Shown here in pieces: positions 57,136 through 61,177 of a stretch of DNA of 64,000 nucleotides. The notes beneath the pieces are model-generated. The model was not told the origin of the DNA, did not search any database, and worked only from the letters and a program-made list of their open reading frames with translations. The position numbers and the translations under genes were made by a program. Origin of the DNA: Dimorphilus gyrociliatus. Its lineage: Eukaryota > Animalia > Annelida. The stretch lies in contig CAJFCJ010000006.1 in NCBI GenBank assembly GCA_904063045.1, positions 5,162,408 to 5,226,407 of the forward strand, written 5' to 3'. Position 1 is the stretch's first letter, and each line of letters begins with the position of its first letter.

Positions 57136-57765
57136 TTAAGGCAAATCAAATTTGTAAAGATCAGGTGTCACCAACTTGAGAGCGAGATGCGTAACCATTG
57201 CAGTAAATCCCCAAACTTTATCTTTTCCAGGACAATTATAAACAGGAAGAGCTATACTTCTTTCTTTCCATATTGTATATCTGGCGTGTCTACTTAATTC
57301 GCTTAAGGTTACTGTAAACACCTTAGCAACTTCTCCAGTATTTACAGATAAACTATCTAAATTCAGAGGATTTTTTAAAACACCCAAAACAGGATGAATG
57401 GCCATTCCATGTCGAGCAGGTAATCTAAACATTGTACCCCAGACATCAACATCACTTTCATTAATTCCTACTTCTTCTTTAGCCTCCCTAAGGGCAGTTT
57501 TAATTGGATCTTTGTTGTCCGAGTCATCAACCTTTCCCCCAGGAAAACTAACTTGTCCTTTATGGGTAGGTAAATGATGAGTACGAACGGTGAAGAGGAG
57601 AGATAATTCATCATTCACGATACATAATGGAACTAAAACTGCTGAATTTTTATAAGATTTGCTTAAATTTGGTTTTGAAAGAAGTAATTCCTGACATCTT
57701 TTCTTATTAGTCTCATTAATAAGTGAATAATATGAGGTTTTCGATAAAAATCTTCTCAGCTGCAT
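57136..57765 (-). CDS. NUDT8: Nudix hydrolase 8 (CoA diphosphatase-like, mitochondrial); intronless CDS
   Basis: SAVLVPLC..LLFTVR..HKGQVSFPGGK..TALREAKEEVGI (NuCoA + Nudix box), KVWGFTA, and a basic N-terminal presequence. Confidence 0.9.
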   Translation of the reverse strand: MQLRRFLSKTSYYSLINETNKKRCQELLLSKPNLSKSYKNSAVLVPLCIVNDELSLLFTVRTHHLPTHKGQVSFPGGKVDDSDNKDPIKTALREAKEEVGINESDVDVWGTMFRLPARHGMAIHPVLGVLKNPLNLDSLSVNTGEVAKVFTVTLSELSRHARYTIWKERSIALPVYNCPGKDKVWGFTAMVTHLALKLVTPDLYKFDLP

Positions 57766-57890
57766 TTATTTATTCTCTGACAGGTCAATTCGAAATAAAA
57801 TTCACTCTACTTCTCTCCACAGGGTCATTCGTTTATGAAAACTGGTTTGAAATATTTCGGCTGAGTCATGTCAAAAGCTGGTCTGCTACA

Positions 57891-59413
57891 ATGTATGACC
57901 ATGAAGAATTGGATGATATGTTTGTCGAAAAGCTCAAAAAAGAGGATAGAGACATCTGTAAAAGTCATATGTAAGAATTAAAAGTAATTTAAATGTCGGT
58001 TTTTATCAAATTTAATGTTTACAGTACAGAAACAAGTTATGCTGGGGATATTTTAAAGTTTGGTACAGCTATATCAATTGCATCAGGAGCTGAGCCGCTA
58101 CCAATCAATGAACAATGTATAGAAAGTGAAAATAATTCTTTAGCTGAGTACGACGATATCAAAGACGATGAAGTTAAAAGCAAGAGTTCTTCTGATTTAA
58201 TCTATACTGGTTATTCAGCAAAATCTGGTTTTAAAACAGAATCAAAACATACTATTGATGATGCAAAGAAATTTTCGGGGATTTTTTTCAATAAAAAACC
58301 TGGAAAAGACGAGGTTTTTATTTTTTAAGTTTCTTAAATTTTAACTGACAGCATGTTTATACCAGGGAGTTATTGTACATGTGATTAGCATTGACTTTCC
58401 GAATGAGACACGAAAGTCTTGTATTGAAGAAGAATTGACTGAATCATTTGAGGCAACGAAGCGAACGAAGAAATCGTTGTTTATCCTCTGCAATTTGAAA
58501 CAAGAAGTAAATTTTAGAAATTAAAGTAATTTTATTATCTTATACATATACTTTTTTTAAAAAGGATTACTTCAAAGCAATATCACTATTTAAAGACTGT
58601 CGGTATATTATTATGTTCTTCTCAACTCATGGCGCAAAGGATTATATAAAATTCGTTGATGGTCAAGTGGTACAATTAGAGAGGTTTATAAAAGACATAG
58701 AAAGTACACTTGAAAACGCAGATATACTAAATTATTTCTTCTGCTGTCAACATATTGCCGGGAAAAGTTTTAGCTACAAAAAATCGTACAGTGAAACAAT
58801 GAAGCGTGACGAAAAGTATCCGTTTTGTGTATTTGTATCAAATGTTGGCAGTAAGGTATACCGCCACAGAATATCCAAAGTGAATGTTTATGTGGTGAAA
58901 GGATTTTTACAGCTGGCTGAAGATTTGCCAGCATGGTCGGAAGTTAAGAAGAGCGATATAGAAGCTTTGAAAACGGAGTTAAAAATGCTGTCGGGTCCTT
59001 ACATACAGATATCAAATAAAAAGAAAATATTACTTAATACAGGATCATCCTATAGAATGTAAGAATTTAACAAAACTTGTAAAATTACTACTTTTATTCA
59101 TGTAAATTCTGTTTGCAGAATCTCTGATAAAGATGTCTTTATCAAGTACGATAAGTTTACCCTGACATTGAAGAATAAGAGCGATTCTGTCGTCAAGGTT
59201 AGAAAGAAACTGTTAAACAAAAACAAAAAGAGGAAAGTTTTTAACGGAGATTCTATAAGTATCGATCAGAAGATAATCACTGTACATTTTCTGTTTGAGG
59301 AGAGCATTATCCGTTCGATGAAATCTGGAGACCTCGACCCGACACCACTCTTAAATTTAAATGAAAGATTTCGATATTTTTTTCGCAACTTGTTCAAAAA
59401 GTTGATTAATTGA
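57891..59413 (+). CDS. Divergent caspase-like (clan CD, peptidase C14-fold) protein with C-terminal extension, about 432 aa
   Basis: Exons 57891-57970, 58025-58313, 58366-58506, 58565-59058 and 59119-59413 are all GT-AG and phase-consistent (1299 nt). Strand/helix order and motifs match caspases: GVIVHVISIDF..R, IIMFFSTHG, VDGQVVQLERF, LNYFFCCQH, FCVFVSNVGSKVYR, PYIQISNKKKILL. Confidence 0.7.
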
Positions 59414-59689
59414 AATAACGATTTGAAATTATGAAATATATTTTAAATTATAAACAAAAAACTTGTATGAAATATTGTCGTGCTATCAATCTTTTATAAG
59501 CATGGAAACTGAAAAAATAAGACATTGTAAAGATTCTTTACTTCGTATTGTTTCAAAAAATTTTGGGTGGTAAAAAGTAGTTAGGACTAGACTACTTTCA
59601 GAAAAGCGACGTAAAAGTAGATACCACTAAATTTCGCTTGGCAAGGAATCAGTTTTCAGAAATATACTTTATTTGCGTATTTAGATACA

Positions 59690-61177
59690 ATGTTCTCATT
59701 GGATTTTCTCAAAGCTGAAACTGAACGTAAAAAGAAACAATTAGAGGCCACAAATGTTATGGTAGCTTGATTTTTATAAAAATTTCGTCATTTAATGTAT
59801 ATTTTAATCAATTGAGCGATAATTGAATAATTTTAAATTTCTTTTTAAAATACTTTCTTGTTCTTGAGATAAATAAAACCTTATTCTGATTATAGAAAGA
59901 TGGTAAGAAATTTTTTAAAAGAGGAGATTTAGCAGCTAAACAAGAAGAAGAATATTGGAAACGTCAAAAGAGATTTAAACCAGCGATTGAAGAGGAAAGA
60001 AGAGATGTAAATAGCATATCTTAAATTCTAAAAGAATATTTAAACAAAATTTATGTTTTTTGATCAGTCAAGTCCAGCCCCAGACAGTGATAAAGATGAG
60101 CCAAAGCCGAAGAAAGAAGTAAAAATTTCTAGAAAAGAGATTATAAAACGCTTAAGAGAAAGACAAGAACCCATTAGACTCTTTGGAGAGAGTGATGAGG
60201 AAGCATTACAAAGACTGAAGAGATTAGAGATTGAAATGCCTGATATCAACAAAGGTAACAATATACACAGTCTTACATCGCATTAAAATCTCTATATATG
60301 TATCGTTACAGGTTACAAGAATGATTTTATGGCTGCTATGAATACAGTTGATAAAGAGTATAATGAAGCAATTCTTCAATGTTTCAATAAAGAGGAGGCT
60401 GATAAAAGAGCTATAAAAATGGCGGATGTTGATGTTAGAAAAGAAGCCGACGATTGGGATTCTATTCAAGTAGGGATTTAAATATTTAATTAAGAAGGAA
60501 ACTAAAATTGAATTTTTAGGCCGATTCAGTGAAATTTGGAAGAAATAATTCTAAATTTGACAGTAACCTTATTCTACGATATTTAAAGTTAGTTTTGTGG
60601 AAATGGGGAAGTCAGTTGAATTCAAGAAGACCTGAAGAAAAGTTGCAAGGTAGCGGAAAAATAGCTAGCGCAACTCATCGACAAACTGTTGAATATATAA
60701 AGCCTCTTTTCAAAAAGTTACAATCAAACGTAAGTTACATTATTTTACATTAGTTTTCTTTATTAATTAAATATTTTTGTTACAAAACTTAAGGGGTTGG
60801 ACGAAGATTTACTTGGCTGTCTCGTCGATATTGTTAAACATCTTTTAAAGCGAAATTATATTAAGGTATGTATATATAATTAGAAGTTAATACTGAAAAA
60901 AAAGGAACGTCTTCCTTCTATTTTCTTCTAGGCTAATGATGCATACGTAGAAATGGCAATAGGTAATGCCCCTTGGCCAATTGGTGTTACTATGGTTGGT
61001 ATTCACGCAAGAACGGGTAGAGAAAAAATTTCCGCTAAGAACATAGCTCACGTTTTGAACGACGAAACTCAGCGTAAATATATTCAAGCTTTAAAAAGGC
61101 TTATGACTCAAGCGCAAAATTTCTATCCAACTGATCCAGCGAGAAGCGTCAATTACGAAAGGCGCGAAGATGATTAA
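59690..61177 (+). CDS. PRPF18: Pre-mRNA-splicing factor 18
   Basis: [94 protein letters not shown]. Confidence 0.96.

Follow-up and report, generated by a model that had tools for sequence, protein, structure and literature searches.

Peptidases of clan CD share the pattern His-Gly...Ala-Cys, with a hydrophobic block ahead of the cysteine, and cFLIP, a pseudo-caspase, has lost both the histidine and the cysteine. The subject of the present analysis is DgyrCDS5537, a gene of the miniature annelid Dimorphilus gyrociliatus located on the forward strand of contig CAJFCJ010000006.1, within a stretch of 64,000 nucleotides (nt) that is referred to below as the window and from whose first letter all positions are counted. 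The large-subunit half of its product is very probably a true caspase homologue. Its nearest known counterparts are Dronc (Drosophila caspase Nc; PDB 2FP3, 3J9K) and the caspase-2/-9 type of long-prodomain caspases; Dronc is the best sequence match, over approx. 95 residues that extend from strand beta1 through the His-Gly pair and the hairpin that follows. Dronc has the pentapeptide PFCRG and cleaves after Glu as well as Asp, i.e., its P1 specificity is relaxed (PMC2180229). Like Dronc, DgyrCDS5537 has a long N-terminal extension and an active-site region that departs from QACRG. In contrast to Dronc, no CARD was found in it, the x-x-C-R-G pentapeptide is lacking, the small-subunit half is unrecognisable, and an extra module of approx. 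110 residues is present at the C-terminus; identity between the two is in the low twenties of percent.

With cFLIP-type pseudo-caspases, DgyrCDS5537 shares a caspase-derived domain without a canonical active site, and a regulatory, non-catalytic role is plausible. However, cFLIP possesses tandem DEDs, whereas DgyrCDS5537 keeps His-Gly and two cysteines, and no orthology is implied by the comparison. The GPI8/legumain family (C13) and the bacterial CHAT/DUF6642 proteins also exhibit a His-Gly motif behind a hydrophobic strand, but their matches to DgyrCDS5537 are weaker than those of caspases, and Pfam gives no signal for these families. Within D. gyrociliatus itself, five canonical caspases (CAD5120521, CAD5120522, CAD5120530, CAD5115032, and CAD5125939) are to be compared; several of them carry variant pentapeptides, which suggests that drift of the active site is common in this species. 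A preprint on lophotrochozoan apoptosis lists five D. gyrociliatus caspases (bioRxiv 10.1101/2023.12.11.571055). The canonical five either pass the Pfam Peptidase_C14 profile or are listed there, whereas DgyrCDS5537 does not pass the profile and is absent from the list of five. CAD5120522, judging by its printed sequence, appears to consist of an unrelated enzyme-like N-terminal region fused to a caspase domain, and may be a merged gene model.

Probable caspase homology of the large-subunit half

The similarity to Dronc was found by searching 177,635 PDB sequences with phmmer, using residues 170-400 and 172-295 of the GenBank protein (P0001) as queries. With residues 170-400, Dronc was the top match (E-value 0.0077); with residues 172-295, two Dronc entries were retrieved at an E-value of 0.0035, and the GPI-anchor transamidase GPI8, which also belongs to clan CD, was the third match, on the same His motif. 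The alignment to Dronc begins in beta1 (GVIVHVISIDF against GVLLMVNIMDY), continues past the catalytic histidine, and contains the blocks DFPNETRK/DYPDQNRR, NLKQEDYF/NVNQDQFF, IMFFSTHG/VMVLMTHG, and IKFVDGQVV/VEFRDGSVV. In Pfam, Peptidase_C14 (PF00656) is the only relevant match; it is limited to profile positions 68-103, around STHG, and its score of 12.8-13.0 bits (E-value 0.08-0.09) is below the gathering threshold of 21.4. Exon 4 used alone as the query retrieved nothing above threshold from either Pfam or the PDB.

A set of 50 Pfam-positive caspases, which are not evidence in themselves, was collected by a search seeded with 60 residues of CAD5120521 (paper's supplement), and a hidden Markov model (HMM) was built from an alignment of 30 of them. 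This HMM scores 9.2 bits against the 432-amino-acid protein, and its large-subunit (p20) part alone scores 14.1 bits; neither score is reached by any of 3000 residue shuffles. Alignment to the caspase profile with hhalign gives P 0.0013, with a probability of only 18%. In pairwise phmmer comparisons, all 50 caspases score below 6 bits, and DgyrCDS9086 scores -0.2 bits. In the ESM Atlas, the model of this protein (predicted local distance difference test, pLDDT, 0.49) has as its neighbours over residues 170-367 five Peptidase_C14 sets as well as bacterial DUF6642/CHAT, at a template modelling (TM) score of approx. 0.5.

Scans with profiles of single motifs place the best sites for beta1, the histidine, C-x-x-L-x-G-K, and beta6 in the same order as in caspases, at domain positions 5, 66, 113, and 193. 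In particular, the top site for beta1 is the one in exon 3, which is not significant alone, and the His motif scores 14.4, a value reached by 2.5% of shuffles. Arg139 fits the R-x-G-x-x-x-D-like stretch RKSCIEE when read by eye, with a shift of two residues relative to the HMMER alignment. Since the PDB search, Pfam, the HMM built here, and the ESM-model neighbours all point to one family in one register, caspase ancestry is favoured over chance likeness. As judged from these alignments, H192 (numbered as in the 432-residue protein) is the counterpart of the catalytic histidine, and the surroundings of His-Gly are those usual in caspases. Of the original prediction, which was made from the DNA letters alone, the homology to caspases is supported from beta1 to alpha3, including the histidine in STHG, by the Dronc alignment and the p20 HMM, and the resemblance to long-prodomain caspases by Dronc being the best match. 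Its statement of an alignment over the entire caspase fold is too strong, as support is confined to the large-subunit half.

Candidate nucleophiles and the remaining regions

Past the histidine, the assignment of residues is much less straightforward. The codons that had been quoted are correct (CAT for the histidine, TGC and TGT for the cysteine pair), and in the 432-residue numbering the pair becomes C230/C231, situated 38-39 residues after H192. It had been proposed that FCCQH replaces QACRG and that the His/Cys dyad is retained. The beta4-QACRG profile, applied to three candidate placements, favours FCCQH (1.4, compared with -6.4 and -13.4 elsewhere); however, this score is no better than chance, ranking 11th among 219 offsets. 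With hmmalign, the QACRG columns could not be placed, and a PDB search with the His-to-linker part gave no relevant match, leaving the stretch around C230/C231 uncovered. The aligners choose another placement: hhalign and all of four MAFFT strategies put CQHIAGKS on the caspase loop C-x-x-L-x-G-K-P. In the profile scan this site scores 21.3 against a mean of 10.6 (standard deviation 3.4) for the best sites in shuffled sequences; only 0.8% of shuffles reach it, and it is the only motif past the histidine that beats them. Thus, the equation of FCCQH with QACRG is not borne out, and a retained dyad goes beyond the evidence, the placement of the cysteine being at chance.

The two placements are mutually exclusive. 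A genuine match of CQHIAGKS to the loop would push beta4 further along the chain, with PFCVFV as its most plausible site, and the position of the nucleophile would be occupied by Asn263 (in SNVG), or by a serine if no insertion is allowed, but not by a cysteine. If ILNYFF is beta4, C230/C231 follow it directly, in keeping with the hydrophobic block expected in clan CD and with a near-normal spacing between histidine and cysteine; counted from alignments, DgyrCDS9086 has a spacing of 42 and Dronc one of 47. Under either reading the profile scores of FCVFVSNVG are at chance, and either placement yields a complete set of secondary-structure elements. A pentapeptide of the Q-A-C-x-G type is absent from the protein, and the glutamine of the S1 pocket is missing under every placement. 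AlphaFold2 run without an alignment gave uninformative models (pLDDT 33 for the whole protein and 41 for the domain). In a Foldseek search with the domain model, Dronc came first merely through the amino-acid term, at a TM score of 0.15.

The small-subunit (p10) motifs that had been read in the sequence are not supported, as the p10 HMM and the scans for single motifs are at chance; the family signatures sought were S-W-R, G-S-W-F, and the final beta6. In particular, the beta6 site (PYIQISN...) is the top site for its motif and is not significant, and the FCVFVSNVGSKVYR site is outscored by another site for its motif. No relevant match was obtained in a PDB phmmer search with the p10-like part or in an ESM Atlas search with residues 286-385. 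The assignment of R270 as an S1 arginine hinges on the unsupported p10 alignment.

The first approx. 120 residues are acidic and contain no Pfam domain of any kind; no match to CARD or DED was found in residues 1-122, in agreement with the predicted prodomain of approx. 120 residues lacking both. The C-terminal module has a feature score of 0.90 in the ESM Atlas, where FHA accounts for 17 of 30 matches, with TM scores of 0.56-0.67 to FHA families. No Pfam or PDB sequence match to FHA (PF00498) was obtained for this module, and the canonical phosphothreonine-binding GR and SxxH of FHA domains are absent by eye. The ESM Atlas likeness suggests that the module possibly has an FHA-like fold, which is to be taken as a lead only; if it is true, the residues assigned to the beta6 candidate are also claimed by the first strand of the FHA fold.

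Gene structure, expression, and annotation

The four gaps between the open reading frame (ORF) fragments of the locus were bridged by enumerating all flanking GT donors and AG acceptors, which yielded three open models, one of them encoding the 432-residue protein. The four introns of the coding region are short (54, 52, 58, and 60 nt) and contain 12-23% G+C, with GTAAG or GTTTT donors and CAG or AAG acceptors; the region is AT-rich, G+C being 31% in the window and 34% in the coding sequence. A single public run (X1, of unrecorded kind, available as Logan contigs) contains this DNA, and it behaves as a transcriptome, because its contigs skip GT..AG introns both in the caspase-like gene and in the gene downstream. 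One 1389-nt contig of this run carries exactly the four predicted joints, without a mismatch, and also removes a fifth intron of 86 nt in the 5' untranslated region (5'UTR). Thus, both the enumeration and the transcript confirm the predicted five-exon structure and its open frame, and the transcript joins these exons at the exact positions. The coordinates are collected in Table 1.

Table 1. Features of DgyrCDS5537, in window positions
Feature	Position	Strand	Basis
5'UTR exon (at least the last 29 nt)	57708..57736	+	Transcript contig, whose initial 27 letters map here and join to 57823
5'UTR intron, 86 nt, GT..AG	57737..57822	+	Contig joint 57734->57821 (cut +2)
Coding exons, 432-residue frame	57891-57970, 58025-58313, 58366-58506, 58565-59058, 59119-59413	+	GT/AG enumeration and transcript contig
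Exon 1; coding start ATG 57891	57823..57970	+	Splice model and transcript contig
Exon 2; N-terminal region, residues 27-123, acidic, Ser/Lys-rich, no recognisable domain	58025..58313	+	Splice model, contig; no Pfam match
Exon 3; caspase-like beta1 (GVIVHVISIDF), candidate S1 arginine R139 (58411-58413), alpha1, beta2	58366..58506	+	phmmer alignment to Dronc residues 195-240
Exon 4; remainder of the caspase-like domain and beginning of the C-terminal beta-rich region	58565..59058	+	100% identical to P0001 residues 224-387
H192 codon in STHG, candidate catalytic histidine	58628..58630	+	Alignment with Dronc H271 (THG) and with the SHG column of the profiles
C230/C231 codons (FFCCQH), candidate nucleophile behind a hydrophobic stretch	58742..58747	+	Sequence; beta4-QACRG profile match at chance
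CQHIAGKS, match to the caspase loop C-x-x-L-x-G-K-P preceding beta4	58745..58768	+	Profile scan, hhalign, MAFFT
FCVFVSNVG, candidate small-subunit beta5, or beta4 that puts Asn263 in the place of the nucleophile	58823..58849	+	Spacing and hydrophobic pattern
C-terminal approx. 110 residues (323-432), beta-rich, with basic KKLLNKNKKRK stretch and amphipathic C-terminal helix	59021..59410	+	ESM Atlas
Exon 5, with stop codon 59411-59413	59119..59413	+	Splice model; contig end at 59406

The gene had been described as hidden. It is indeed invisible in a six-frame list of ORFs, but it is already present in GenBank as DgyrCDS5537 (CAD5116671.1, UniProt A0A7I8VPZ8; P0001), an unnamed entry without a precomputed Pfam domain; the gene is thus annotated but uncharacterised. 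The GenBank model has 485 amino acids, of which residues 54-485 are identical to the 432-residue protein, and it starts at an ATG at 57732 and reads through the 86-nt intron of the 5'UTR. In the spliced contig this ATG lies in the 5'UTR exon and opens an upstream ORF of only 6 codons; two further upstream ATGs in exon 1, at 57836 and 57868, open ORFs of 9 and 44 codons. The start of the 485-residue model is unlikely; GenBank probably gives the wrong start codon. RNA depth in the bin of the 5'UTR intron is higher than the listed contigs account for; the excess could represent unspliced RNA of the caspase-like gene or the 5' end of the mRNA of a NUDIX gene on the opposite strand. Another X1 contig tracks the gene as far as 58307, six bases short of the exon 2 donor, and then runs on for 255 letters that are unlike the window (beginning AAAATTTTTATGAAGCGCATGCGC...); it could stem from an alternative joint or from a related locus, or the contig could be chimeric.

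DgyrCDS5537 is an expressed, lineage-restricted orphan. An exhaustive phmmer search of 1.84 billion cluster representatives with exon 4 as the query returned two proteins, P0001 itself and the bacterial repeat protein P0002. The latter was rejected as a relative, its match being a repeat artefact on Y..F.DG.VV, so that no relative was found among these representatives. Word-indexed searches for homologues with exon 4 and with residues 54-485 retrieved only the protein itself, which forms a cluster of one, and tblastn detected no paralogue within the window.

The gene is arranged head-to-head with a NUDIX-domain gene (57136-57765, reverse strand; Pfam E-value 2e-11), and its 5'UTR exon overlaps the first coding exon of that gene on the opposite strand. 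Downstream, a gene at 59660-60520 on the forward strand contains a PRP4-type motif (PF08799, E-value 1e-11) and four short GT..AG introns, which are confirmed by a 2750-nt contig; it looks like a PRP18/PRP4 splicing factor.

Origin and possible roles of the protein

Taken together, DgyrCDS5537 is rather likely to be a caspase-derived orphan that arose from a long-prodomain caspase by divergence so extreme that the kinship is hardly recognisable, and that does not act as an Asp-specific apoptotic caspase. Its large-subunit core (beta1-alpha1-beta2-alpha2-beta3-His-Gly-hairpin-alpha3) is homologous to caspases, Dronc being the closest of them. The remainder of the domain would still complete a caspase-like alpha/beta fold, with the sequence signatures of the family lost; the lost features would include the QACxG pentapeptide, the S1 glutamine, and recognisable p10 motifs. 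The acidic N-terminal tail of approx. 120 residues and the beta-rich C-terminal module of approx. 110 residues may replace the CARD/DED logic of other caspases. As its mode of action would not be Asp-specific apoptotic cleavage, the protein might instead be a catalytically impaired partner or regulator that binds caspases or their platforms in a cFLIP-like manner. Between such an impaired partner and a protease of new specificity (with H192 and C230 or C231), the balance tilts only slightly towards the former, because all testable features of the Asp pocket are missing, which points to a non-catalytic or re-specified role.

Several observations weigh against this account. The sequence signals are all weak, and the bulk of them comes from approx. 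40 residues around the histidine. The evidence for the fold consists of a single low-confidence ESMFold model, with a pLDDT of 0.49. The p10 HMM scores -0.8 bits, which 2048 of 3000 shuffles equal, and the AlphaFold2 models searched with Foldseek against the PDB, with VIA-align, and in the Atlas (the last with the domain model) returned noise only, with a best Z of 4.7. There is no orthologue to reveal which residues are conserved. Furthermore, His-Gly in perfect context and a Cys-Cys pair behind a hydrophobic strand at near-normal spacing favour retained catalysis.

It is these last features that lend substance to the first option of the original prediction, a cysteine protease of clan CD that is active but altered in specificity, in which ILNYFF forms beta4 and H192 is paired with C231 (or C230) as the nucleophile. 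The S1 pocket would then be lined by R139 and R270, with Phe/Cys in place of the glutamine, as Pro-Phe is in the PFCRG of Dronc, and P1 preference would be shifted. His-Gly is kept in its context, the hydrophobic block abuts Cys-Cys 38-39 residues past the histidine, and FCCQH is the best of the three placements of the beta4-QACRG profile (1.4). Moreover, the nearest match, Dronc, has a variant pentapeptide and also cleaves after Glu (PMC2180229), and other D. gyrociliatus caspases carry the variants QTCRG, QACPA, QACQT, and QACQG. However, the placement is at chance (11th of 219 offsets), and without gaps the best match is found at another site; it clashes with the statistically better match of CQHIAGKS to C-x-x-L-x-G-K-P, the AlphaFold2 domain model shows ADILNYFFCCQHI as a helix (at low confidence), and the small-subunit substrate loop is unsupported. 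An active protease is therefore a tentative proposal, of appreciable but minority probability. The competing match is the starting point for the view that the protein is a pseudo-caspase devoid of a nucleophile, with CQHIAGKS as the loop ahead of beta4, PFCVFV as beta4, and Asn263 or the serine of KSYSE at the position of the cysteine; the substrate-binding loops would be gone, and the protein would serve as a binding partner or scaffold only. This view approaches an even chance without reaching it. The C-x-x-L-x-G-K site is the sole motif after the histidine to beat shuffles (0.8%), hhalign and all four MAFFT strategies select the loop placement, the AlphaFold2 secondary structure has two helices ahead of this point, and the p10 half lacks any family signal. 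On the other hand, the loop match amounts to five identical residues only, insertions of 12-13 residues in alpha3 and of approx. 15 residues ahead of beta4 are required, the beta4-QACRG profile gives poor scores at the two sites that this view implies, and the retained His-Gly is unexplained if catalysis has been lost.

The doubts about homology itself bear on the suggestion that DgyrCDS5537 is not related to caspases at all but is an orphan alpha/beta protein that evolves fast, its STHG...DG likeness having arisen by chance. A score below the Pfam cut-off, an hhalign probability of 18%, pairwise scores under 6 bits with all 50 caspases, AlphaFold2-based fold searches that yield noise, and a lack of homologues in very large databases are all in keeping with this suggestion. 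It is nevertheless improbable given the phmmer match to PDB at an E-value of 0.0035 over 95 residues, the top relevant Pfam match, the HMM scores reached by 0 of 3000 shuffles, the agreement of the ESM neighbours, and motif sites that are collinear with those of caspases. Membership of family C13 (legumain/GPI8 type) rather than C14 is far less credible still and may be regarded as very improbable: there is an alignment of the His motif to the GPI-anchor transamidase (...GHGGDDFLKFQD with ...THGAKDYIKFVDG, E-value 0.5), but this score is far weaker than that of Dronc and concerns the His motif only, Pfam gives Peptidase_C14 and not C13, and the similarity from beta1 to alpha2 is caspase-specific. 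It is also conceivable, if unlikely, that the gene represents a previously undescribed, dinophilid-specific branch of caspases that is active, with a Cys-Cys nucleophile site, no pocket for Asp at P1, and a degenerate FHA-like module at the C-terminus.

On the preferred reading, that of a strongly diverged caspase descendant, DgyrCDS5537 would be a sixth, previously unrecognised caspase-derived gene beside the five in the published list for D. gyrociliatus. It would show how far a caspase can drift while its His-Gly core is kept and its expression maintained, and it indicates that domain surveys resting on the Pfam cut-off miss genes of this kind. No description of a caspase-fold domain combined with an FHA-like module was found for animal caspases; such a module, if true, could link a caspase-fold protease to phosphorylation-dependent partners. 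An active protein would extend the active-site chemistry known for caspases; an inactive one would be a candidate endogenous regulator of caspases in a spiralian, a group in which such regulators are poorly known.

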